Origin: Paramoeba atlantica
Lineage: Eukaryota; Protista; Discosea
Assembly (NCBI GenBank): GCA_977017575.1
Contig: CDRNVI010000163.1
Span: 124,001-188,000 of the forward strand
Reading direction: 5' to 3'
DNA: 64,000 bases
Shown here: one piece after another, positions 2,809-20,643 of the stretch
Numbering within the stretch: position 1 is the stretch's first letter
Layout of the letters: every line of letters starts with the position of its first letter
The notes under the pieces: generated by a model
The model's database searches: none
Told to the model about the DNA's origin: nothing
Seen by the model: the letters and a program-made list of their open reading frames with translations, nothing else
Made by a program: the position numbers and the translations under genes

Positions 2809-3018
2809 CACAAAAAAGAACAAACACAAAAAAAACACAAACTCCAAAAAAAAAACCCCAAAAAGGTCGTATTTTAGAGCCAAATAATTTTTTTTTGGAA
2901 TTTTCTTTCTTTTTTCTTTTTTTTTTTTGATTTCTTTTTTGGTTTTGTTTTTGTTTTGGGAGTGGTGGTGTGAACCTGAACCACTCCAAAACAAAATTTG
3001 TGCTTCCTTTTGAGACGG

Positions 3019-4839
3019 ATGGGTTTGTTGTTGAGAGCTGGGATGTATTGTTTTTGTTTTATCTCTCTCTTCCTCATCATCTTTTTTATTTCTACGTCTT
3101 GGTCTTCTGATCTGGAAAGAGACACTCCACTGAAAACAGACAAACAATCACACTCTTCTGGAATCAAAAGCAAAGTCAAAGGAACTTTTGTTTATTTGGT
3201 GACAAAAGAAAAATCTGTTGACACCGCTTCTTCAAACTCCCATCCTGTTTGGGATTATATTGGAGATTTGATTGTCAGTTTGCGATTTCTCCAATTCAAT
3301 TTTAACAAGAAGTTCATTTTTTTTTTTGTTCAAGATGATTCATCTTTTCGACCCTTCTTCTTTCTTCTTTCTTCTTTCTTCTTTTTTTTTGGTAATTACC
3401 TTTTAAAATTCTGATTCAAGTTTTTAAAAAAAGGTATAAATATCCAGTAACAATTTTTCATGATGGGTTGTCTTCTCAGGTTCGTTTTGACCAAAAAGGG
3501 AAGAAGAAAAAGATGAAAGATGAAATATGAAAGAAAGATGAAAAGGAACTCATTCCTAATTATGTTTTATAAAAGGAAATTGCAAAAATTTTAAAAAAAG
3601 CTGGGGAGATCAGTGATCTGGTTACTTTCCATGAAATTGAATTTGATTTCCCTCGAAGCATGAGTTCTCTTTCTGAAACACAAAAATCTGAGGTTCTCTC
3701 CCCAATTGCCTTCCACTCTCTTTCTCTTTCTTTTCTAATCTTTCTTTTTGTTTTAAATAGTTAAATGGGGACACATGCACAGGAAAACCATGGCACTTAG
3801 ATTATCTTCACATGAATCGGTTCTTTACACTCAAAATGTTCCAACATCCAGCGTTACAAGATTTTGATTATTACATTCGGCTTGATACTGATCTTTTTGT
3901 TAAGGGACAGGTTCTCTTTCCCATCTTCTTTTGTTCATTTCCTCCTCTATTTTCCACAAATTAATGATTTTGGAAATTCTTTCTCTCATTCCTTACCAGA
4001 TCCCATTTGACTTGTTTGAAAGAATGAGAGATCAAGATTTATCTTTCTTATTTTGGAATGAAAATACTGAACCACAGGTTTCGTTTTATTATTCTTTTTC
4101 ACTCCAATTTTTGTTGTAGTTTTTCATTGAGAAGAAATATTGATGTTTTTTTAGAATTGTGTGTATGGACTTGGAGAAGCGACGCAAATTTATGCCAAAA
4201 AGAAAAAGATTCCACTTGGGCAATTTGACGAAAGGGTTTGAAAGAGATTCACTTTTGAGAAAATAAGAAAAGAGGGAAAAAAGGGAGAAGAAAATACCAT
4301 AATTTTTTGATGAAGAATTCTCACTAAAAATTGGTCGTGGTTTTCAGAAAGCATACCATGGATGTTTTGGAGGAGGAAAACTAGGTTTCTTTCAATCAGC
4401 AGAATATCAAAACTATGCTGATTATTTGAATGAACTGGGTGGAATATACCACCATCGTTGGGCAGATCAAGTGATCTATCGAATTGCCCTTCAGGTTTTT
4501 TTCTTTCTCCCCTACCCGTTGAGCTTTTCTTTTTTCTTATAATCACTATTTTTTTTTTTCAAGATGTTTGGGGAAACTGGAGCAGGTCATGTAAAACGAT
4601 GGCCAGAATTAGGGAATTATCTCCAACACAACAAACGATATCCATCTGATCTCTGTGTGATTGCTCCAAAGCATCACAAATGTGCCAAGGATTCATCTGG
4701 AACAGGGATTTCTTTTCGATTGGCCTCTGATTCTTTAAAGATGGAGCCTCGTCATTCGGGAGCCTATGCTAAAGTTTATCCAAAAAGAGAAGAAGAACCA
4801 CCAAGACAGAAAAGAAGACAAGAAAAAGAAGACCTTTAA
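3019..4839 (+). CDS. GT15 (Kre2/Ktr/Mnt1-like) alpha-1,2-mannosyltransferase, type II membrane protein, multi-exon
   Basis: N-terminal TM helix, then DYLHMNRFF, FDYYIRLDTD (DxD) and GGIYHHRWADQVI (cf. GGFYYERWGDAPV). Confidence 0.7.
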
Positions 4840-5150: not shown

Positions 5151-8100
5151 ATGTCAGAGTGTAGTGGTGGTAATCCCAGGGATCACCACTTGCCAGCGAG
5201 GAGTAATAGTGGGGAAAGTTACTCCTCTTTCTTTTCTGCCATTTCCCCCACACTCTCCAAAAGTCTAAAAGCAACATCGAATGTTGAGTCTCGGGCAGAG
5301 TCAATCAGAAAAGTTGGGAGAGTTGAGGATGAAGAGAGAAACTTTCTTTCTCCTAAGAAACCACCGAGGTATAAAACAATTCTGAGCCCTGAAAGCCTCT
5401 CTGAGAGTGCCACAGTTGAGTGTCTCCCAAAAAAAGATGAGAGCGTAACAGGGGAAGAAAGATCGAATCAACAAGACCACTTATTTCCAATGACTTCTCC
5501 AAAGAAACCACCCAGACGGAATCAGACAGTAACAAATTCAAAGAGATTCAGTGCCTTTTCTCCCAGACAATCGCCCAACCAACAAGAATTAAGCGCCTCT
5601 TGTCATACCACTCCAACAACAACAACAACAACTCATCATGCAACATTTGTTTCTTCTTCACAACCCCCTCCTCGCCCCACTGTAACACCTTTATTTATTG
5701 AAGAAGATGACCAATCTTCAAACAATTTGAAAATAGGAGGCCCCACCCAAATTTACTCTCTGACTTCTCCCAGGAAGAAATTAAAGAAGAAGGAAAAAGA
5801 GAAAGAGAAAGAGAAACGGATAAGAAAGAGGAGTGTATCTCGCCCATCAGGATCGAGAAGAGGTTCCCATAAGAGATCTCACTCAACAGAACAACATTCT
5901 CTCGTTCTATCAGATGATCCCACTACAAAATCTTCACCTTGTGCTTGTCCTCGCTCTCCTTCTTCAAACCCTTCTTCAAACCCTTCTTCTCCTTCTCCTT
6001 CTCCTTCTCCTTCTCCTCCCCAATCCCCTCTCCAATCTCCTTTCCGTTCTATAAAGAGAAAACAAAAGAAAAATACCAGCTTAATTCAACCAGCAACTCC
6101 GACTCACCTTTCTTCTCCTTTTCAAAAAAAAAGAGTTTCTCATAGAAGGGGAAAGTCTGATTCAATTCGATTGCCTTCACCGGCGCTTCATTTTGAAGTT
6201 TTATCAACTTCTTCTTCCTCTCGCAAGAACAAGAAGAAGATAGTTTTTCCTGTATCAAGCAGCGACATTTCAGAGGTTTTTTAGATATTTTTCTCCTTTC
6301 ATTTGATTTTCTTCTTTTTCAGCCAAGAAATATGAGTGGAGTTCTCATTTTTGATTTAGGAAGAATTGCGTGACATTCGCCTCCCTTCTTCTGTATCCAA
6401 GGAATTCATTTCTCGTTATTATGAAAATCTATCTCAAAACAAAGCTTGTCTTGAATCAATGAAAAAGTTAGGGGTTACAACTCTTGAGACAGAGGTGGAT
6501 CAACAAGAAAAGTTCTCCGAAAAGATGCCTTCTTCTATATCACAAACTTTGAAAGGAATCAAAGATGGTTTGTTTTATTTAGACTTCTTTTTGATTTATC
6601 AATCTCCTTTTCTTCTCTTTCTTCTTTCTTCTTTCTTCTTCTTCTTCTTCTTCTTCTTCTTCTTCTTCTTCTTCCTCTCTCTCTCTTCTCTGTCTTCTCT
6701 TCACTCTTCTTCATCTCTCCTTTCCACCAATTATTTTATTTACCAACCAATTTATTTCAACATCATATAATTTTATCTCTGACAAATTCTTTTCAAAAAA
6801 AAAAAAAAAAGGTTCTCTGAGTTTGGTGACATCGTCCGGGTCTACAGATATGGGTTTAGAGGTGTGGAGGGAATGGAGGGAATTGATTGGTGATATTTTT
6901 TATTTTTTTGACTATTCTTTTGAAGATGGAGAAGGTGGTCATTCTTCGGTTTGACTTTTTTTGTTTTTTTTTGTTTTTTTTTTTTTGTTTTTTTTTTTTG
7001 TTTTTTGTTTTTTGTTTTTTGTTTTTTGTTTTTTGTTTTTTGTTTTTTGTTTTTGTTTTTATTTTTATTTTATTTTATTTTATTTTATTTTATTTTATTT
7101 TATTTATTTTACTTATTTATTTATTTATCTTTCCTGCTTCTTCCTCTCCTTCTTCTTTTATGGCACACACAAAAAAACTTTGTCTCAAAAATATTTTTAA
7201 AAATCTTTAGTGGAGTTTAACTCGACGACACGACTTCAATCGAAGAATTGACCTGCAAGATCGTTTAAAATTTCAAAAGAATTGTACTGTTAGTGATGGT
7301 ATGACGCCCCAAATTCGAAGATCCGAAATCATCAAACCTTTATCAGAATCTCACGCTCCTCTTGGGGTAAATTTTTTTATTTTTCTATTTTCTTCTTTTT
7401 TTTTTATTTTTTATTTTCTTTTTAAAAAGAAATATTTTTTTTTTTATAAAACAGGAACAAGAGAAAAAATGGTTGTCGATGAGTCAATATGCGTATCGGA
7501 CAAGAAAAAATGTTGAACATTCTTTGGCTTTGTTGGATGCTCAAGATAATCACTCTTTTTCTTTTTTGGTTTTTGATGAAGAGGATAATGAAGAGGAAGA
7601 AAGGAAGAAAGAGAAGGAGAAGGAGAAAAGGGAGAAGAAAGGAAAGAAGGAGAAGAAGGAGAAGAAGGAGAAGAGAGAAAAAGAGCGAAAGGAAAAAGAG
7701 GAAGAGGAGGAAGAGGAAGAGAAAGAAAAAGAGAAGAAGAAAGAAAAAAAGGAAAAAGAGAAATCAAAGGAAAAGAAAAAAGAGAAAGATGGGCAAGAAA
7801 GGGAAGAACATAAAGAACAAGAAGAGAAGGAAGAAAATGAGAAAGAGAAAGGAGCAAAAGAAAAAGAGAAAACAAAAGAGAAAGAAAAAGAAAGTAGGGG
7901 AAAAGAAAAAAAAGAGGTTGAAAAGGAAGAACAGAAAGAAGAGAAAGATCTACTATTTCCTCATAAAAAGAAAAGGAGTTTGAAATCAATCATGGAAAGA
8001 AAAGAAAAGAAAAACGAAAAAGAAACTAAATCAAAAGAAAAAGAAGAAGAAGAAGAAAAAGAAGAAAAAGAAGAAAAAGAAAAAGAAAAAGAAAAAAAAG

Positions 8101-10194
8101 AAAAGAAAGAAAAAAAAGAAAGAAAAGAAGGGAAACAAGAAAAAGAAAAAGAAAAAGAAAAAGAAGAAAAAAAAGACGAAAACGAAAAAGAAGAAAAGGA
8201 AAAAGAAAAAGAAAAAAAAGAAAAAAAAGAAAGAAAAGAAAGAAAAGAAGGGAAACAAGAAAAAGAAAAAGAAAAAGAAAAAGAACAAACAACAACAACA
8301 ACAACAACAACAAAAATACCACCACTCTCAACAACAACACAAAAAACACAATCACAAAAAACACAATCACAAAAATCACCACCAAGAAGTCTCTCAAATT
8401 CACCAAGATCATTTTCTCCAAGAACCCCCCGTTTTTTTCATTCTCCTCGTTCTTCATCCAAAGAATCTCCATTATTATCGAAAAAAAAATCTCCTCGTTC
8501 CCCCTCTTCTTCTTCTTCTCATTCTCCTTTTTTATTACACCAATCCACTCCTCAACAATCACAACCACATCCACATTCCCCGCGAATTAGATGGTCTCCA
8601 CACCGAGTCTATTTACCAGAAAGTTCACCACCACAATCACCAACACCTTTTTTTCTTCATTCCCCAAACCAACGGTCAAAGTCACCAACAACAAAATCAC
8701 CAACCAAAAAATCACCAACAAAATCACCAACCACAAAATCGCCAACCACAAAATCACCAACCACAAAATCTCCAACAACAAAATCACCAACAAAATCACC
8801 AACCACAAAATCTCCAACCACAAAATCTCCAACCACAAAATCACCAACAACAAAATCACCACCAACAAAATCTCCGATGATCCAACAACTTCAACAAGAC
8901 AACACAAACTCGACAACAAGATTGATTGTTATCCCACCCACAACATCCAAATATCGAAAGCCACAATTCCTCCCTTCAAAGACACAACTCGATCCATCAA
9001 ATCTCTCCACTGCCTCGATAAATTGTTCATTTTCAAAATCATTTAATCTCTCAAGTGATATCATGTCGGCGACTCTTGCTTCTCTGGCCACAGCTATCGA
9101 GACAGCGGGGGATGATGTTCTTTACTCCACAGACCCTTCTTCAACTCCTTCTTCCTTTACTTCTCAAACATCAACAAATTCCCTCTCTTTAAACTCTCTC
9201 ACTCCAATTGCAGATTGGTCAACCCCTCCAAAAGTTCAAGAAGGAGATCGCTCTTCTCTCAGATTGACTCGTTCAGACCCCACTCTTTCTGATTCATTCT
9301 CTCTCACATCAACTTCCTCTTCTTTTGATTCAGGAAAACCGAAGGTTAATGTTAGTTTGAAAGGGCCTTTGAAGGAAGGAGATGTGTTGGTTCGTTTGTT
9401 CGGAATGAAGGGAGGAGATGGATTTTTTGTTCGGTTTGTTTTTGTTCTTTTCAATGTTTTTTGAGAAGAGTTTTTTTTTTTTCTTGATTTTTTTTTTAAA
9501 ATTTAATTTTAGAGGGAAACTAGTAGCAACTCATGTTTCGATGGAATCAAGTGGTCGAACACCCGGCATTTTTCATCCTTTTAAAGTTTGTTCTCTTGCT
9601 TTTTTCCAATTAAATTCTGTTTTCTCCCCCACCCCCCTTCCTTTTTTTTTTTTCAAACAAAAAAAAAAATAGTGTGCTGCCCAATTTGTGGGAACAGCGA
9701 CAGGGTTCTCCACAGGAATGCAATGTCACGGAGGTTTCTACGATATTTGGCAAAGGATTAATAAGGGATGTTGGGATCAATATGAAATGGACTTTGCTGA
9801 TCTTGTCTATCATCGTTGGAGTGAAGAGAAAGACAAAACAAAGAGAGGGAGGATTGTGTTGGTTGGACACTCGATGGGGGCTTGTCTTGCATCGATTGCT
9901 GCTTATCAACTTATCAACAGATATCCCGAAACACAAACTTCAATCCTTGTTATTACATTAGGAGCTCCATTGTTTGCTCGAAAAGGCTTTAATGATTGGA
10001 TTGAAAGTAACGTAGAAGTGTTAAATATTTCTTTGGTTGGAGATCCCACAATCACATTGCCTGGACTTCCATTTACTGGTTGGAATTCTCCTGGAAGAAG
10101 ACTTTGGATTTCACCACATGGTGTGGAGTTGGAAGAATCTGATCCACACTTTCAGTACTGGGAATTACTTCGATTCTTCCTCTTGCGATTTTGA
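5151..10194 (+). CDS. Large multi-exon protein with a C-terminal class-3 lipase domain and long low-complexity regions
   Basis: Last exon has CHGGF, VLVGHSMG (nucleophile), ITLGAP, GDPTITLP (Asp) and HFQY (His). It joins upstream exons by GT-AG introns. Start codon uncertain. Confidence 0.7.
8685..8875 (+). repeat. Coding 12-15 bp tandem repeat encoding (SPTTK)n
   Basis: About 12 tcaccaacc/aacaaaa units inside ORF 7473-9464. Confidence 0.9.
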
Positions 10195-10362
10195 GATCAT
10201 CTCAAAGAGGAGAGAGAGGGAAGGAACCTTTGGGCATTTTCAAAAAGACATAACAGTATTTTAATAATTATTGGGTCATTCCAATTAATGGCTAAAAAAC
10301 CAAAAACAAAACAAAAGAAAAAAACAGCAAGATAATTAATTTACAATCAAAAAAATTTGTGC

Positions 10363-11334
10363 TCAATCGTCAAGTTGACAACCAAAGCCAGCAAAGATGA
10401 GTTGATGTCCATTCAAATCTTTGACAACAAATTCACGAAATCCCCATGGTTTAACTACCGGTTTGGTAACGATATTGGCTCCTTGTTTCTCATAAAGAGC
10501 ATAAAGTTTATCCACATCTGATACACGGATGTGAAGCTTTGTAGAAGGCACAATTTGTTGTTCTTTTGGGATTTGTGACAATTGGATGGTCACATTCTGA
10601 ACGGACCATTCACCACGAGAAACACTTGCGTGTGTTGGGGGAGTACCAAGAATAAAATCAATTCTGAAGTTTAATTGATCTTGAAAGTATTTGGCACTGG
10701 CTTGGACATCATGGACCATCAAGACAGGTTCGACATGAAAGAATTCAACCTCCTTTGTTGTATCATCATCATCATCATTGTCAATGATTTGTTGTTGTTG
10801 TTGTTGTTGTTGAAAGAATTCTGATTGACGCAACCCCCAAATCCCCATCACATGAGGCTCTTTCTCATGGTCAAATTGTTGAGGAAGACGTCCTTTAAAA
10901 GAAAATCCCAACTTTTGTGCGACTCGCATAGATGGTTGGTTCCTCTCATCAATCCAAAGTTCAATCACTCGAACGTCAAGCTCTTTAAAAACATATCCCA
11001 AGACAGCTTTTGTCGCTTCGACAACAAACCCTTTACCCCAATAATCAGGATGAAGAAGATATCCCATCCCTGGTACACGAAATTGACTGAAGAAATGGAC
11101 TTGTCCAATCACAGTTTCTTGGCCTTTCAGACGAATTCCCCAAAGTTTGGTTTTGTCAACACCGTAATCATGAAATTGCTTTTTTGTTTCAGCAACAGTT
11201 TCATGTTTTGGAGTGGACATAAAACGCATAACAAGATCGTTACTGTAGATGGAATGTAAATCTTCGATATCTCTTTCTTCCATTGGTTTTAAAACGAGAC
11301 GTTCAGTTTCAAGAATTTGCCCATTTTTTGCCAT
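10363..11334 (-). CDS. Intronless fusion of a RimJ/RimL-type GNAT acetyltransferase and a VOC/glyoxalase domain
   Basis: ILETERLVLKP, GYLLHPDYWGKGF and NQPSMRVAQKLGF (Acetyltransf_3-like); then EPVLMVHDVQASAKYF and KPWGFREFVVKDLNGHQL (VOC). PolyQ/polyD linker. Confidence 0.88.
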   Translation of the reverse strand: MAKNGQILETERLVLKPMEERDIEDLHSIYSNDLVMRFMSTPKHETVAETKKQFHDYGVDKTKLWGIRLKGQETVIGQVHFFSQFRVPGMGYLLHPDYWGKGFVVEATKAVLGYVFKELDVRVIELWIDERNQPSMRVAQKLGFSFKGRLPQQFDHEKEPHVMGIWGLRQSEFFQQQQQQQQIIDNDDDDDTTKEVEFFHVEPVLMVHDVQASAKYFQDQLNFRIDFILGTPPTHASVSRGEWSVQNVTIQLSQIPKEQQIVPSTKLHIRVSDVDKLYALYEKQGANIVTKPVVKPWGFREFVVKDLNGHQLIFAGFGCQLDD

Positions 11335-11469: not shown

Positions 11470-14390
11470 TCATTCTTCTCCTTCATATCGTTTTGCTGGT
11501 TTGAGAACAACATGTTTTTCAGAGTCAAGAACCAAATTTTCTGGTCTCTCTAGTGAACCCAAGTTCTTTCTTGTTCGCAACTCTTCTAACGTTTCTTGAA
11601 ACTGATCTCTTGAATTTCCCCATTCTCGATCAGCCACATCTTCCCACAAGACATCAACAATTTGATAATCTATCACCCCATACAATTGACGGAGTTCTGA
11701 GTAAATCCCCAACAATCGAATACATCTCCCATGCCCAACCAAAACAGTCCCTCCTCTAGGTGGGTCATTTTGCTTGCGAATCTCACAAGTTGCTCCTCTC
11801 TTTTTAAATGCACTCACTACAGCCTCAACTGCAAAGGAGGAGCAAATAATTTCCATTTGATAAACAGGTTCAGCCAAACTAGGACTACTTCGCAAGAACA
11901 ACCCATAAAAAACCTTTCGAGCAGTCGGGATAATCTGTCCTCCACCTCGGTGAATTGCATCCGAATGCAAAACCACCTTTGTAATGCGAAAGACGAGACC
12001 TCTCATTGGTTCATGACCAAGAGGCCCCTCTAACATGGCCCACCGAAATGCTGCAAGGATTGAGTCTCGGACCTCTCGAATTGGTTGGGACTCTTCGATA
12101 TCACAAATCAATAAATTACCGTTTGTATGAGCCCAAATTGCGTTTTGGTTTGGTGCATACACCCCCCCCAGCTGCTCCAACTTCTTTTTCCATTCATTCA
12201 AACCTATCCTTTTTTCTTCTTCTTCTCTCTCAGCTCTTTCCAGCATCCTAATCACATTTTCGGGTAATCGGTCTACTTCCATTTCGATCAAGTTATGTCT
12301 GTTGGAGGATTTCGCATAGCACGGGGATGAACACCCATTGATAATCTCTCGATATTCAAGAACCAAAGGAGAGATTTCAATATCAAAAGTGCTGTTCTCT
12401 TGCATAAAGGTTAGAGCCTTTTGAAGACTCTCTTCAGATCTTGCAGAGATGCTATTTTCCATTGTTTGTTCCCACTTGACCATTGGGAAACATCGGGCAC
12501 CGTTTCGAAATAAGTCCATGAATTTTGCCAAATCGCTTGGGGAAGGCACATCCAGAAATCTAGAAACAACTCTTGGAAGCTTTGGGGGTTGAGGCGGGGA
12601 GAAAAAAGAATTTGAACAATTTGGAGAATCACTAATTATTCCTGTGAAAGGAGAAAGAATGAAAAAGAGAGAAATTAATTTTTTTTTTAAAGAAAAATAA
12701 TAAAAAAATCAAACCCTGGACCGATCCTTTGAAAAGAAAAATTTGACCAGCAAAAACCATTCCAATCTCCTCAGGAGAGCTTTTCTCACACACATGAAGT
12801 GAAAAAGAACTGTTCTTCATCTTTTCATTATTAATAAAAAGAGAAGAGGGGTTCGGCAGTGTTGAAGAAAGCTCACCACAAAAAATCCGAGATAATTGAA
12901 AGATTGGGGATCTTTTTGTACACAAAGAGACAAAAGAGCGAGCTAATAATGGTCCCTTTGTTTCACAAGCTCGAATTGCCTGTTTTTTTTTTTTGTTATT
13001 ATTTTTTTACTTTTGAAATTCAAAGAGGGTTGTTTGAAAATGGTTTTGTATTTTTGTGTTTCTATTTCTCTTGATGTGGTGGGATGATCAAATTTTAATT
13101 TTCAAGGGGAGGATTCTGATTGACAATAAAATTTGTACAATAACAAAAGAAAAAGAATAATAAAAAGAAGTAAACCTGAGTCTTTTCATCATCTGGGGGA
13201 CCATTATACAAAATCTCACACCGATATCTTTGCGCAACGGAGGGAGGAGGAATGTAAAGAGTAATGGACGTCAAGATCGCATTCCCAATAGGCATAAACT
13301 CACTCAACATCACCTCTTTCTTCTCAGGGAATGTGAGAGAGAAAGCTTTTATCCCTTGTTCAATGGCTGGTTTATCTTTTGCTTTGATTGCATTGGAAAG
13401 AGATTGTAATGGCTCCAAAATAAATTCTACAAAACCTCTTTTTCCTTGAGTCTCCTTGGACCGGGGTTCCCATTCACTTGTCTCTTCATTGTATGAGAAA
13501 TTTCCCCACAAAAGCTTTTTCAAGTTCTTTTCTTTGAGTTTAAATTTGTTTTCATAAACGTGGACAAATCTATCGAGAGAGAAACCCCAATTCTGTGTAA
13601 GAGAACCAAAGAGAACATTTCCCTTTAAGGGAGAGAAGTGAAGATGTTCCCCCCAATTTGCAAGAATCCCTTCTTCTCTTGCTTGCTCAATTACTTGGTT
13701 CAATTCTTGGATGATTGAGAATATCATTTTGTATCCATTTTCAAGAGAAGAAGGAGAAAGAGAGAAAAGTTGGTCAATGTTGTTAATGAAGAGGATGGGG
13801 ATCACTCTTTGGTAAAGAGATTGAAACAAAGAAGATTTGAGTGTCTGGAGAAAAGAAGCGGAAGGCTGGGAAGAAGAAGAGGGAGAAGAGGAGGAGGGAG
13901 AAGACAAAGGAGAAGAAGAAGAAGAAGAAGAAGAAGAAGAAAAAGAAAAGGTTGGTGATGCGATTAAAAAAGCACCATCAACAAGTGGTAAGAGAGAAGG
14001 AAGATCATCTTGTTCCATTGGATGAACTGCTGTGATTAAAATTGGGTCTGTGCTTTCCTTCTCTTCTCTTTCTTCTTCTCCTTCTTCTTCTCTTTCTTCT
14101 TCTTTTTCTTTTTCTACTTCTTTTTTCTCTCCCCCCAAAAAAGAAAGAGAAGAAATCCCCTTGCCACCAATCTCCAAAGGGCCTTCAAAAACAAAAGAAG
14201 AAGGGGAATGAAAAACATGATCAGTCCCAAGATCACCATCATCCCATCTTCTCTCCAACACGATCGGATATCGGTTCCTTTTCCATCTCCAAAATTGAAA
14301 TGGGAAGAGAGAAAAATCTTCTTCTTCTTTTTGTTCTTTGAGAATGATTATATTTCTCAGTTGCTCAGGTTTGTTGAAATCCTTCATTTT
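11470..14390 (-). CDS. Elongation factor 2 paralog with degenerate G domain (3 or more exons; first exon uncertain)
   Basis: LRNIII, LVDGAFLI, PILFINNID, KGNVLFGS, LWGN, PPSVAQRYRCEILYNGPPDD, AKSSNRHN and VLHSDAIHRGGGQIIPTAR align with eEF2 domains G, II-V. Confidence 0.85.
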
Positions 14391-15937: not shown

Positions 15938-17113
15938 ATGGGGTGTGGTTCGAGTCACAATGTCGATGAATCTGCATACAACAAGAACAAGCAAATCAAC
16001 CGATACTTGAAAGAGAGCAGCCAACCCAACATTTCAGGAAACATCCGCCTTATGATGCTGGGCCACGAACAAAGTGGAAAAACCACTTTTTGTCAACAGT
16101 TGAGAGTGTTATACAGTGAGGAACCATTCTCCAAGGATGAAAAAGAAGTCTATCGTGATCTCATCCACGCCAAAATCGTCTCTGCCCTCACGGGACTCTG
16201 CCGTAAAGTGTTGAACAGCAAGTCCTTTGAATTGCAGGGAGAGAGTAAATTGAGGATAATGAATTTCAAAGAGAAATATTTCAATTTGAGCCCGTCTTTC
16301 AGTCTCACCATACATGCTCGCAAGATGGGGTATAGTCGGACAAGTTACGATGATCTTCGAAATCCTCGCCCAATGTTTTTGATGAATGAGCAGATGATAA
16401 AAGATATTCTCTCACTTTGGAAGGATCCAGTCATTCAAGAATCTTGGCAACACACCACGCTCGATAGCGACGAGCTGATCCCCCCTATTTTGGGATACTT
16501 CATGGACCATTTTCATCGAATCACAATGGTGGAAGAGGACGAGGAGAAAACCATCTCTTACATCCCAACAACAGAAGATATTTTACACTGTGGGTTGAAC
16601 ACCCAAATTATTGAACAGTTCATTTTCCAAATTGACGACCACACCTTTGACATATACGAGTTTGGAGGAATCAAACCAAGAGCACCAGAGCGAGATATCT
16701 TCGAACATATGGCTAACGCAGCTCTTATTCTCTATTTTCTCTCTATGGACACGTATGGCGAAGATAATTCTGAGGGAAACGTGTTTGCCTCCAGACTCGA
16801 GCACCTCGACGAATTTAAAAAGTGCAAACGATTCCACAACACCAAAATCATCCTCTTTCTCTCCAAGTGTGATGTTTTTCGAAAAATCATCGAAGATAAA
16901 CCCCTTTCCTCTGTATTTCCCAAGTTTAAGGGGAAGGATACATACGAGGGAGCGATCGAGTTTGTGAAAGAGAAGGTGAGAGAGACCGTGGGAGAGAGAG
17001 TGGTGTTTGTGATCGAGACGAATTGCATGGATGTTGGGGATGTGAAGTATGGTTTTGAGAGTGTGCTGGGCACTCTACGTCATTTCACCACCATCAAACC
17101 TGCTGTTTATTAG
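15938..17113 (+). CDS. Divergent heterotrimeric G-protein alpha subunit, intronless
   Basis: MGCGSS lipidation site, P-loop LGHEQSGKTT, YIPTTEDIL, EFGG (G3), FLSKCD (G4), TNCMD (G5). Confidence 0.92.
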   Translation: MGCGSSHNVDESAYNKNKQINRYLKESSQPNISGNIRLMMLGHEQSGKTTFCQQLRVLYSEEPFSKDEKEVYRDLIHAKIVSALTGLCRKVLNSKSFELQGESKLRIMNFKEKYFNLSPSFSLTIHARKMGYSRTSYDDLRNPRPMFLMNEQMIKDILSLWKDPVIQESWQHTTLDSDELIPPILGYFMDHFHRITMVEEDEEKTISYIPTTEDILHCGLNTQIIEQFIFQIDDHTFDIYEFGGIKPRAPERDIFEHMANAALILYFLSMDTYGEDNSEGNVFASRLEHLDEFKKCKRFHNTKIILFLSKCDVFRKIIEDKPLSSVFPKFKGKDTYEGAIEFVKEKVRETVGERVVFVIETNCMDVGDVKYGFESVLGTLRHFTTIKPAVY

Positions 17114-17567
17114 TACTAGATTCTCTCAGAGTGTGAGAAGAAAAACAGAAACTCCCAATAATCTTTTTTTCCTCCCAAGAGTCTCCCAATTTTTTTTTCT
17201 GCCAATCTTTTTTCTTTCAGCCAATCTTTTTTTCTCTTCAGTTTTTCTGCGATTGGAGCCTCGTCCCAAACAATTAAGTCTGTTTGTTGGATTATTTTTG
17301 CTAGATCTGATCGAGGTATGAAAATACAGACATCCGAGTTTGAGGGGTGAATTGGAATCTTTTTAGTTCACCGATCTATACTGCTCCTCCATTAATTTAC
17401 TCGAGATGAGTTAGAACGTGAGCTCTTCCAAAAAAGAACCATCCCAAAACCTCCAACCACAATTACAACAACAAATGAACCACCAAAAAAAAAAAGAAGG
17501 AGGAAGAAGAAGAATGAAAAAAAAAAAAAAAAAAGAGGAAAAAGAGGAAGATACAATATTTTTTTTT

Positions 17568-18575
17568 TTATTTTTTCAATTTTTTGCTTGATTGTTTTCC
17601 ACAATTATCACAATGCTTTCGAAAACATTTCTCATAAGAAAACCCAACCGAACAATGCGGACACTGCATCTTTTTTCTCTTCTTTGCCTCTTCTGGTGGA
17701 TTTTCTTCACTCTTTTCTTCTTTCTCCTTTTCCTTTCCTCTTCTCTTCTCTTGTTTATTTTTTAAAACCACTTTGTTCAAAGCAGCATTTTCTGAGGTGA
17801 AAAGAACAGGTGACACATGAAGAGGATGGAACGGGGTCCCATATGCAAGAAGTTTGCTGCTTGATAATCGCAACTCCGAAAATTGAGCATTGTCTTCCTC
17901 ATCGCCTTCTTCTCCATGAGCCTTGAGATGAGGCAACAAACCGGATTCACGATTCGAAAATGTCCTTGGACAGAAAGGACAAAAGAATTCTGGTGCCATT
18001 TTTTTGTTCTTCTGTAACAACATAAGAAATGGAATCACTTCTGTGCTCTTATGAACAACACTAGCTGATTGACTCTTCTCCCACACCATTGGCAAAACAC
18101 CATCTTTAACAGCTTGCAGAGCCAAAATCCCTGCTTCACCATGAGAGCAATTTTTGCTTCGTCCAATTTCGCACTAATAAACCAATCAAAATTAATGATT
18201 TCATTTAATTCATTTTTCAAAAAAAAAAATGAAAAATCTCACACCGTACATTCACCTTGTTCAATTTGACCTTTTCTGGGAATCACCATCGCAGAATGAC
18301 AAGGGGGTTGGGTGAACAGTTGGGCAAACTGAAAAAACAATCTGAAAGTAACCAACCTCTGTTTTGGAAGACCAAAATTGAACCTTTGAGATAAACCCAG
18401 AAGAGAAAAGGCGCATTGCTCGTGTTCGTGGGTACAAAGGAAGCTTGGTACTTTCGCTCTCTGGAACTCGATCAAAAAGGGTGTTTTTTTGTTCGAAATC
18501 ATTTCTTTGTTCCTCATGAAATTTCACTGATGACGGAGTTGATAAAAAGTTATAAAAATTCTCTTGAAGCTGTTT
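17568..18575 (-). CDS. SWIM zinc finger plus two C2H2-like fingers; one frameshift at 18303-18307
   Basis: RAMRLFSSGFISKV...PCHSAMVIPRKGQIEQGECT|CEIGRSKNCSHGEAGIL (CxC-x7-CxH across intron 18244-18174); CPFCPRTF..LLPHLKAH; CPHCSVGF..FRKH. Confidence 0.7.
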
Positions 18576-18617
18576 CTATTCAAAGATTTTTTTTAATTTT
18601 TTTTTTTTGAGAGAAAA

Positions 18618-19856
18618 CTAAAAATAAAAAACAACCTCCCAATCTATTGGAATAGCATCTAACAACCCTTTAAAGAGATCTTTTACTTTCTCGAAAGAGT
18701 GTGGAGATGATAAGAGTGGTGGTGGTAGTAGTGAAGGGGGTGAAAGAGGAGAATATCGTTTAAAGAGATCGCAAGCATGCTTTTTAATAACATCACTGAG
18801 ATCAACTTTCTCTTGGAGTTCAAAAGGTGTAAAAGTCTGACGATTGGCCAAGGCATATGCAATATCAAGAGCAACTTCGCCATGGAGGATGTCATGTCTA
18901 GTCCAGTCACTCTTCCGACCAACATTCTTCTGTGCAGCATGATGTCTGCATTCAACTTGTGCTCGAGCTTTTTGTTGTAAAAAATCATGTTTAACTTGAG
19001 ATGCCAAATACTGTTTTCTACCACAAAGATTGTGTGGTGTTTCAAAAGAGAGCAAGTCTTCACACACCTCCTGATCTTTCTTTGTTTTAAAGAAAACTTC
19101 ACGTATATCAAATCGGCTGCCACCACGATCGAAAATAACAACAATTCCAGCAACATTCTCACACAAAGTACAAGACTCAGTGAAGTAGGGACACTTCTTC
19201 AGCGTCTCAATTTCTTCACTTGCTCCACCAAGAAGTGGGCTTCGATATAAAAAATACCCATCAGGTGCTGTGAAAGCTCCGAGTTTCACCGTATGAAATT
19301 TCTTGAGTTTGGAACTATAGAGAATATTCGTGAGATGAAGGTTTGACCAAGGGTGGTTGGACACAATTATTTCCTTTGGATCAGAGAGGAGACAGAGAAC
19401 TACTTGGTCCTTTCCGTATTTTTCTTCAAGAAAGATTTTCAGATCATGTGGAGTGTGTTTCTCAAAGATTTCCTGAGGAGAAAGAAGACGAAAATAATAC
19501 GGCACCCAAAGAGCAGAAACAAGAAATCCACCATTCTGAACGAGAGTCCGAACCTGGGTTGCAGAACCAACAGGGTAGTCAACAGAAATTTTTTCATAAC
19601 CCACACCCCCAACATAATAGAGAAAGACTAAAAAAAACTCGATCACAGGGGGCACACCACCAGAATTGTTGCGCTGGTGATGGGAGTTAGAAGAAGTCCT
19701 AAAAATTGGTAAGAGGATGTCTTGGTTCAAGGGTTCATGGCGTCTCATAAAATAATTCCATTGTTCTTCTGTGACAAGAGTCTGAAAATCAAATGCCAGA
19801 TCTTCTGGAGTTGAAAAACCACACATTCCTCGAAAAACTCGGCGGTGAACCTCCAT
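18618..19856 (-). CDS. DDE_Tnp_4 (HARBI1/ISL2EU-like) transposase; probable start ATG 19856, frame open to 20120
   Basis: RGMCGF and an HTH-like FLVFLYYVGGVGYEKIS segment; SDPKEI (D1), YSSKLKKFHTVK..PDG..S..GGASEE, IFDRG (D2), ARAQVEC (E). Confidence 0.82.
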   Translation of the reverse strand: MEVHRRVFRGMCGFSTPEDLAFDFQTLVTEEQWNYFMRRHEPLNQDILLPIFRTSSNSHHQRNNSGGVPPVIEFFLVFLYYVGGVGYEKISVDYPVGSATQVRTLVQNGGFLVSALWVPYYFRLLSPQEIFEKHTPHDLKIFLEEKYGKDQVVLCLLSDPKEIIVSNHPWSNLHLTNILYSSKLKKFHTVKLGAFTAPDGYFLYRSPLLGGASEEIETLKKCPYFTESCTLCENVAGIVVIFDRGGSRFDIREVFFKTKKDQEVCEDLLSFETPHNLCGRKQYLASQVKHDFLQQKARAQVECRHHAAQKNVGRKSDWTRHDILHGEVALDIAYALANRQTFTPFELQEKVDLSDVIKKHACDLFKRYSPLSPPSLLPPPLLSSPHSFEKVKDLFKGLLDAIPIDWEVVFYF

Positions 19857-19934
19857 CTGAGATTTTGAGGAAAACGAAGCGATCCCGAAAATTTGGAGAG
19901 ACCAAAACGGCGCAATTTTTTTGGCGAATTCATC

Positions 19935-20643
19935 CAAAATAAAACCTGAGACCTTCTTACAACAGATTGATGAAGCCGCAAGAGAAGCTTTCAATAAATG
20001 GAGAAAAGATGGCCTCCCAGCTGAAATAGAAAAATCAAACATTAATAACCTTTGGTACGCCCAAAAACTACTTAAAAAACTCAGAAACAGCAAAAAAATC
20101 TTCAAAAACAAAGTCAGCAAAAGAATTCATGAAAACCTGCAAGACAAATATAGAGACCTCCCACAATACAGACGAAGGATAAAACTCCTCCCAGAGTTCA
20201 TAGAACAAACCAAAGAAATAATTGAAGATACAATAAGCACAATCGGGTGCCCGATCAATCTTCCAAAGGAAATAGCAACTGGAATCACCAATCCATATTT
20301 AAAAAAACCAAACACACAGAAACTCAGACTACTAAACCCAGAAACTAAAATGGAGGAAAAAGACCCAAACAAAGTCGCTCAACAACTGGGAAATTTCTGG
20401 GAAGGAATCTTTGGAAAGGAAAGACCAAATTCCCAAAAAAAAATGGAAGAACTCCTCGAAGACTACCCCGAAATTTCTCAAGAAGATGATTTTACAATTG
20501 ACCCCAAACTTGTAACAAAAATAATCTCCAAAACAAATAGAACTGGCTCAGGACCAAATGGAATTCCTTTTTCATACTACAAAGCTATGCATGACGAATT
20601 CCCAAGTTTCTGGCCTGATTTCATTGAGGCGGCAATCAGTTGA
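19935..20643 (+). mobile_element. Fragment of a non-LTR retrotransposon (LINE) ORF2, truncated at both ends
   Basis: VAQQLGNFWEGIF and SKTNRTGSGPNGIPFSYYK match the pre-RT and RT-start motif (K-S/A-PGPDGIPxEFYK). A/C-rich composition differs from flanks. Confidence 0.72.

Follow-up and report, generated by a model that had tools for sequence, protein, structure and literature searches.

The locus described here occupies positions 17,568 to 19,856 on the minus strand of a 64,000-nucleotide stretch of Paramoeba atlantica DNA (the window, taken from contig CDRNVI010000163.1 of assembly GCA_977017575.1, positions 124,001 to 188,000), and it raises the question of whether a transposase reading frame and a neighbouring module of SWIM-like and C2H2 fingers belong to one spliced gene and, if so, to what kind of element. 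Coordinates given without a contig name are window positions; the assembly is referred to as G000, the contig of the window as C163 and a second G000 contig as C156. Comparison of the window copy with its relatives makes it very likely that the transposase open reading frame (ORF) and the finger exons are a single gene joined by two phase-0 introns. The first exon encodes a divergent transposase of the PHIS type, and the unit to which the gene belongs is a gene pair, in which this zinc-finger transposase lies beside a TET/JBP-like dioxygenase gene.

On the minus strand, exon 1 (18636–19856) runs for 407 codons from the ATG at 19856 to ...TGG GAG and encodes a helix-turn-helix (HTH)-like N-terminus followed by a DDE catalytic domain. 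Beyond the GAG at 18636 the sequence reads GTTGTTTTTTATTTTTAG, and the 60-nucleotide, A-rich intron 1 (18576–18635; phase 0, GTTGTT...AATAG) has an in-frame TAG at 18620-18618, four codons into it. Exon 2 (18245–18575; 331 nucleotides, 110 codons) contains one surplus base, ends with ACG at 18245, and supplies a linker, in which the motif P-x-x-RA-x-x-L...VQF is conserved, together with the opening half (...GECT) of the SWIM-like finger. Intron 2 (18174–18244; 71 nucleotides, phase 0, GTGTGAG...TTATTAG) interrupts the CxC of that finger, dividing the CxC...CxH motif as ECT|CEIGRSKNCSH. Exon 3 (17568–18173) has 201 codons (coding 18173-17571) and a TAA at 17570-17568, and it carries, in order, CEIGRSKNCSH, a conserved (I/V)P(F/Y)L motif, a C-x2-C-x12-H-x4-H finger (17987-17916), a K/E-rich stretch, and a C2HC-like finger of the form C-x2-C-x12-H-x3-C (17663-17601), the stretch between the two fingers being lysine-rich and resembling a nuclear localization signal. 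The spliced total is 407 + 110 + 201 codons, about 718. An earlier note, made from the sequence alone, had placed the exons, the phase-0 GT..AG introns and the fingers at these positions, and all of them were verified in the minus-strand sequence. The contig itself is eukaryotic, with short GT..AG introns and an adjacent G-alpha gene.

The identity of the exon-1 protein was established through homologs, features and fold, all protein searches being made exon by exon. The direct Pfam result speaks against a PHIS assignment: DDE_Tnp_4 (PF13359) gave no match for window:18621-19856(-) even at E<=1, and a close paralog, P0002, reached 13.7 bits, so that the label of the earlier note, "PHIS-type", needed indirect support. 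An exhaustive phmmer scan with the window protein returned 33 relatives, including P0009 (E = 1.4e-15), P0014 (4.3e-8), P0026 (1.1e-4) and P0028 (2.8e-4), and these four pass the DDE_Tnp_4 cut-off of 24.8 bits (25.6, 26.2, 36.3 and 45.9 bits, respectively), P0026 also giving a weak match to HTH_Tnp_4. The hidden Markov model (HMM) search proposed in the earlier note thus gave a divided answer, DDE_Tnp_4 missing the window protein and recognizing its relatives, and the label itself stands. Language-model features likewise fell into DDE_Tnp_4 clusters (0.95, 184 shared features). In an alignment of 15 sequences, D159 (LLSDPKE), E162, D243 (FDRG) and G245 are invariant, and the candidate for the third catalytic residue, the E of RAQVEC (R-x-x-V-E), occurs in the window protein and in all homologs that cover the region; judged from this alignment, the DDE triad is intact in the window protein.

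The fold was assessed on the homolog P0009, which stood in for the window protein. Residues 1-365 of its AlphaFold model are confident (predicted local distance difference test score, pLDDT, about 90) and superimpose over ~300 residues at 3.2-3.5 Å on Atlas clusters that combine HTH_Tnp_4 with DDE_Tnp_4, some of them with THAP; matches of the model to PDB structures are weak, and nearly all are transposases or retroviral integrases. A PDB sequence search gave nothing for the transposase or the dioxygenase, a word-index protein search with exon 1 returned only the gene call of the window itself, and a profile built from the subfamily misses the many canonical DDE_Tnp_4 copies elsewhere in G000. 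Taken together, these results identify the exon-1 protein as a divergent PHIS transposase.

They also bear on the view that there is no gene here at all, only ORFs and GT..AG pairs that arose by chance in AT-rich DNA. The region is partly of low complexity and Pfam is nearly silent on it, as that view would have it, and it is refuted by the 33 HMMER relatives, by ratios of nonsynonymous to synonymous substitution rates (dN/dS) between paralogs that lie well below 1, and by the confident fold of the homolog; its probability is practically negligible.

Whether the finger exons belong to the transposase gene was decided by comparison with relatives at several distances. P0009, 30% identical to the window protein, is a 661-aa uninterrupted ORF on two independent contigs, in which the DDE domain is followed by the ...LDAVPRDW motif that ends exon 1 of the window, then by a linker, CSCPVGQEGCCSH and a C2H2-like finger. 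When the exons were aligned one by one, the column of P0009 in which exon 2 ended was adjacent to the one in which exon 3 began; exon 2 aligns to the region after the DDE domain in P0009, P0028, P0014, P0031 and P0027, and exon 3 aligns to the residues of P0009 after CSC and, by tblastn, to L025. In P0028, P0014, P0031 and P0027, too, the frame is open from the DDE domain to the CxC, passing a shared P-x-KRA-x-x-L...VQ motif, and further downstream on the contig of P0028 an ORF encodes the IPxL motif and a C2H2 finger. The P0009 contigs lack a poly(A) tail, and a metagenome locus scan with P0009 found nothing.

Closer relatives show where the introns are present or absent. L026, 57% identical, has both introns at the codon boundaries of the window and in phase 0, with lengths of 110 (GTAAAG...TGAAG) and ~110 nucleotides, against 60 and 71 in the window, and with different sequences. 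Intron 1 is 59 nucleotides long in L002 and L027, at the position and in the phase of the window, and the position of intron 2 is kept in L002, L027 and L026. In the more distant L053 (33-39% identical) intron 2 is absent, and QCTCEVGQGSQCSH is contiguous within ...WSQCTCEVGQGSQCSH..., a reading that matches the join proposed in the earlier note. The dN/dS between the window and L026 is 0.26 overall (exon 1, 0.20; exon 2a, 0.28; exon 2b, 0.61 over 19 codons; exon 3, 0.42), and exons 2 and 3 are thus coding sequence under purifying selection. The in-frame fusion proposed from the sequence alone is well supported by these continuous homologs, by the conserved introns of L026, by the intron-less L053 and by the constraint on the two downstream exons.

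These data were weighed against a two-gene layout, in which the transposase ends at the TAG of intron 1, a separate SWIM/C2H2 DNA-binding protein is encoded downstream as in Harbinger (Myb/SANT) or ISL2EU (YqaJ) elements, and the fusion in P0009 is a lineage-specific event. Such a layout would agree with the gene callers, which list the ORFs apart (P0001 of 342 aa and an ORF of 185 aa), and with the two ORFs present in most PHIS groups (PMC4482050). It also gains from the fact that the one-gene case, with both of its splice junctions, is built on comparison and not on RNA, which counts against a single gene. On the other side, no start codon is conserved in exon 2, whose conserved coding sequence sets in right at the AG acceptor, in phase with exon 1, in three diverged copies; five distant homologs are continuous; and intron 2 splits the CxC...CxH motif, so that splicing would be required in any case. 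Two separate genes are therefore very improbable, and the single spliced gene remains the reading that we follow. The further suggestion of the earlier note, that retention of the intron yields the transposase alone, is speculation.

The zinc-finger tail was compared across the same relatives. The CxCx7CxH spacing is identical in four sequences, which read ECT|CEIGRSKNCSH in the window, CQ|CEVGKGESCSH in L026, CTCEVGQGSQCSH (contiguous) in L053 and CSCPVGQEGCCSH in P0009. A word-index search with the P0009 C-terminus returned only P0009 itself. A weak exon-3 match on C235 (L024) was dismissed, as it lies in an ankyrin-like, low-complexity region.

The second member of the gene pair was found at the 3' side of the transposase gene. 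Homology between the window and C156 runs past the transposase stop and ends abruptly at 17352, and on the plus strand at 17352–17484, convergent with the transposase gene, the window holds a relic comprising the last ~45 codons of a TET/JBP-like 2-oxoglutarate/Fe(II) dioxygenase gene (GIFLVHRS...ELERELFQ...) with an internal stop. This relic is 93.8% identical to L002, the fragment on C156, where the minus-strand ORF 2956-4221 is complete. In L026 a dioxygenase gene follows the transposase gene on the same strand at a distance of ~0.9 kb, and in L053 another (12004-12708, with two in-frame stops) follows at 1.5 kb, again on the same strand, so that the arrangement is convergent in C156/L027 and tandem in L026 and L053. 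The earlier note had described a one-gene architecture, which does not hold for the element as a whole: the dioxygenase gene adjoins the transposase in three diverged copies and persists as a stub in the window, and the unit is a pair of genes.

The TET/JBP-like character of the partner was recognized from residues, features and fold. Pfam gave no match for it, Tet_JBP (PF12851) included, and the PF12851 matches in G000 are four other, larger genes, none of which belongs to the partner-gene family. H220, D222 and H269 (HxD...H) are invariant, and an R before VGIF occurs in seven of eight sequences; Atlas features point to Tet_JBP at 0.95. The AlphaFold model is of moderate quality (pLDDT 60, predicted template modelling score 0.61), and its best Foldseek matches are TET2, CcTet and CMD1, which make up the first 13 listed, with NgTet1 at ranks 18-26; the TET-type matches have E values of 3e-5 to 4e-4 and stand ahead of most generic 2-oxoglutarate oxygenases. 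A word-index search with the dioxygenase alignment found nothing, probably through swamping by K/E-rich words.

G000 also contains at least 12 intact, intron-less paralogs of the dioxygenase gene (287-370 aa; C137-C201, L040-L051). Among the 12, the dioxygenase of C156 is the closest to that of L026, which fits joint inheritance of the two genes, as far as sequence similarity can tell. A profile search of G000 with the subfamily alignment found the window copy alone, from which it follows that the other TET-like genes do not lie beside relatives of this transposase. Several of the dioxygenase paralogs are 99%-identical duplicates with sharp homology edges, and these probably ride on other repeated elements.

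The condition of the copies is the next question. Compared with L002, L027 and L026, the window copy carries a surplus base in a C5TT run at 18301–18307 (minus strand; C5 at 18307-18303, then TT), where it reads CCCCCTTG (CCCCCTT) against CCCCCTG in L002; in L027 (CCCTCTG) and L026, too, the additional base is missing and the frame is maintained. The earlier note had attributed a break in the frame to one surplus C in this run. The break is real, and its removal yields the ~718 codons, but the paralogs vary in the C run and the surplus base is therefore not assignable specifically to it. The same extra base is present in the ENA contig L015, which differs from the window by 7 mismatches and 9 gaps in 12.2 kb; given these 16 other differences L015 is not the same assembly, and the recurrence of the base in a second, non-identical assembly makes the window copy probably a pseudogene. 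Its spliced message would stop 13 codons past the shift, before the zinc fingers.

The remaining copies of the lineage are damaged as well. G000 has only one full copy and one fragment, the latter being L002 on C156 (86% identical), which starts inside exon 1. L027, the counterpart of C156 in an environmental assembly (87% identical), is full length with several stops and two frameshifts. L026, from the same environmental sample and not part of G000, has four in-frame TGA codons (5227-5229, 5887-5889, 7088-7090 and 7388-7390 of its contig). L053 (ENA ctg2401l, 7725-10494, also from an environmental assembly) has stops and has lost both the second catalytic Asp (FNHRG for FDRG) and E162. The exons are conserved only a little better than the introns (88-92% against 81-86%). 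Between the window copy and its closest paralog dN/dS is 0.55 (1.04 in exon 2a), so recent selection between these two looks relaxed. The transposase family looks extinct or dying in this amoeba lineage.

These observations bear on a proposal of the earlier note, that the locus is a domesticated gene. In that reading the gene is a functional host gene, the frameshift is a sequencing error, and low copy number and constraint reflect a cellular role. It draws on the single-copy state in G000, on the dN/dS of 0.26 against a distant paralog, on the intact DDE triad and on the absence of detected terminal inverted repeats (TIRs). Contrary to it, the extra base recurs in a second, non-identical assembly, every other copy of the lineage is truncated or carries stops, recent dN/dS is relaxed, the copies sit in differing flanks full of other repeats, and the window retains only a truncated form of the linked partner gene. 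With all four copies of the lineage damaged, domestication is unlikely, and decay of a transposon copy is the account that we retain; the window locus is best annotated as a transposon-derived pseudogene rather than as a pair of hypothetical proteins.

In decayed transposon copies of G000 and the environmental sample, in-frame stops are mostly TGA, several of them standing opposite CGA or TGG in the intact relative. A recoding of TGA was considered, since all four stops of L026 are TGA, one of them opposite a TGG and one opposite a CGA of the window, and it was rejected: TGA ends 9 of the 20 long ORFs of the window, and a change of CGA to TGA also explains L047 versus L048. The TGA stops look like decay by transitions, possibly involving CpG methylation, rather than like a changed genetic code.

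Comparison of copies was also used to search for the ends of the element. On the 5' side, homology between the window and the 87%-identical paralog in L027 ends at 19857–19864 (minus strand), with unrelated sequence upstream, and positions 1-359 of L027 are a repeat with at least 10 copies in G000 (84-96% identity) that ends exactly at the 5' junction of the transposase. The earlier note had proposed that TIRs and target-site duplications (TSDs) be defined from such copies; none were found around the window copy, L026 or L027, and mobility is accordingly inferred only from diverged copies in unrelated flanks. One TIR candidate, AATCT...GTTCACCG, which paired the 5' edge with the 3' edge at 17352, was rejected, the 3' edge being a truncation inside the dioxygenase coding sequence (GIFLVHRS). 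At the start codon, a motif ATGGAG(G)TTCACCG preceded by AATC..AG is shared by the window (19856-19843, minus strand), L027 (from 361), L025 (from 474) and L054 (from 36); in the GC-rich P0009 contigs it is read in another frame after a 1-nucleotide difference, and its conservation is thus at the DNA level. It may be a chance likeness or a conserved cis site.

The window locus lies among other transposon fragments. On the plus strand at 19921-20643, directly next to the 5' end of the oppositely oriented transposase gene, is an ORF of 240 aa that ends in ...GSGPNGIPFSYYK..., which looks like the start of the reverse-transcriptase domain of a retrotransposon without long terminal repeats (non-LTR); it has no Pfam match and one 75% relative, on C153. 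At about 17240-17290 on the minus strand, a frame containing ...DLIVWDEAPIAEK... presumably resembles motif II of Pif1/Helitron-type helicases; this frame, which would be a further piece of a transposon, has the dioxygenase stub on one side and the G-alpha gene on the other. The latter, an intron-less gene on the plus strand at 15938-17113 (Pfam 178 bits), lies about 240 bases beyond the transposon relic. Across G000, most of the canonical copies of DDE_Tnp_4 lie on contigs C1-C103 together with the four strong Tet_JBP genes, in pairs of near-duplicates, and the contig group of the window (C137-C248) holds introns, G-alpha and the TET-like family; G000 may be a composite assembly.

From these results we propose that the window family is a divergent branch of PHIS elements, apparently undescribed, whose transposase has a zinc-finger module of its own at the C-terminus. 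In canonical Harbinger elements, targeting of the transposase to the element ends and its import into the nucleus depend on a separate Myb/SANT protein. By analogy with that partner, the fused SWIM/C2H2 tail would probably do the same job in cis, and the dioxygenase, by analogy with TET-bearing fungal transposons, would oxidize methylated bases on the element and so counter silencing. The family occurs in the amoeba lineage and in GC-rich protists known only from metagenome and SRA contigs. The full proposal, that of an undescribed and widely scattered PHIS branch in which a fused SWIM + C2H2 module replaces a trans-acting partner and which, at least in amoebae, has captured a TET/JBP-like gene, is one to which we give about even chances.

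Several points weigh against this account of the window gene and its family, in addition to the DDE_Tnp_4 result on exon 1 and the basis of the splice junctions already described. The SWIM profile (PF04434) reaches 14.1 bits (E = 0.034) on the P0009 C-terminus, below its cut-off of 19.6, and gives no match on the contiguous ORF of L053. On exon 3, zf-C2H2_4, whose cut-off is 27 bits, reaches 22.9 (E = 1.2e-4), and several C2H2 models score 14-17 bits on L053, also below cut-off. The C-terminal part of the P0009 model is of low confidence. Copies are very few, none of those seen in the amoeba lineage is intact, neither TIRs nor TSDs were found around the three copies named above, and the roles proposed for the tail and for the dioxygenase are assigned by analogy.

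If the proposal is true, a cut-and-paste transposon has captured a DNA-demethylation enzyme outside fungi, and the recurrent pairing of transposase and dioxygenase would extend the idea of methylation-editing transposons beyond that kingdom, while hinting at a system of cytosine methylation directed at repeats in the amoeba. In the usual description, a PHIS transposase depends on a second protein for DNA binding; the fused branch would unite the two in one natural polypeptide, which would help to explain how PHIS enzymes locate the ends of their elements and to annotate genes overlooked by current family scans.

Placed beside known systems, the window family shares with the PHIS groups (Harbinger, Nuwa, Pangu, ISL2EU and Spy) the DDE pattern D..E...yS.K..h..K...G..LGG...E ... 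DRG ... R..VE and the N-terminal HTH. A survey of PHIS elements describes mostly two-ORF elements, the second ORF encoding Myb/SANT in Harbinger, Pangu and Nuwa and YqaJ in ISL2EU, with Spy having one ORF and the ISL2EU transposase combining DDE, HTH and THAP; SWIM is not mentioned there (PMC4482050). The statement in the earlier note that Harbinger has a separate Myb/SANT ORF agrees with this survey, and of its statement that the second ORF of ISL2EU carries SWIM/YqaJ, the YqaJ part is found there and the SWIM part is not (PMC4482050). A full-text literature search for SWIM together with ISL2EU or Harbinger gave nothing relevant. The window family differs from these groups in having no Myb/SANT or YqaJ second ORF and no THAP; the observation that YqaJ is not recognizable here was upheld by Pfam, in which Myb/SANT and THAP were also unseen. 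Its C-terminal SWIM-like + C2H2 module is undescribed in the survey, and by description the family fits none of the survey's PHIS groups, which is in keeping with the new lineage that had been suggested as a possibility (PMC4482050). The PHIS groups themselves are defined by TIRs and TSDs, and the window family is set apart here by domain content.

An architectural likeness is offered by the MULE/MuDR transposases and their derivatives (FAR1/FHY3, MUSTANG), in which a DDE domain is followed by a CxCxnCxH finger in one polypeptide. The catalytic superfamily is unrelated, however, so that the resemblance to the window family is one of architecture only, and SWIM membership of the finger is not established by HMM. 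For the partner gene, the known proteins that come closest are Naegleria NgTet1, Coprinopsis CcTet, Chlamydomonas CMD1 and human TET2, to whose TET-type double-stranded beta-helix fold its model is matched at 11-15% identity and with TM-scores of 0.35-0.5.

The nearest parallel to the pair as a whole comes from fungi, in which a 2025 paper reports eleven DNA transposon lineages that carry TET/JBP genes (PMC12730594). One of them, PHISTA, is a PHIS lineage of rust fungi with TA duplications and a third ORF that is not Myb/SANT (PMC12730594). PHISTA and the fungal TET transposons share with several diverged amoeba copies a PHIS-type transposase beside a TET/JBP-like gene. The window family differs from PHISTA in its amoeba host, in a dioxygenase too divergent for Pfam Tet_JBP, in the lack of any visible third ORF, in the zinc fingers of its transposase and in a gene orientation that varies among copies; relative to the fungal TET transposons, the amoeba gene pair is known by adjacency and not as one TIR-bounded unit. 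The family thus joins features that are each known from elsewhere, in a combination and a host group that are new: a PHIS core, a SWIM-type finger like that of MULE transposases, and a linked TET-like gene.

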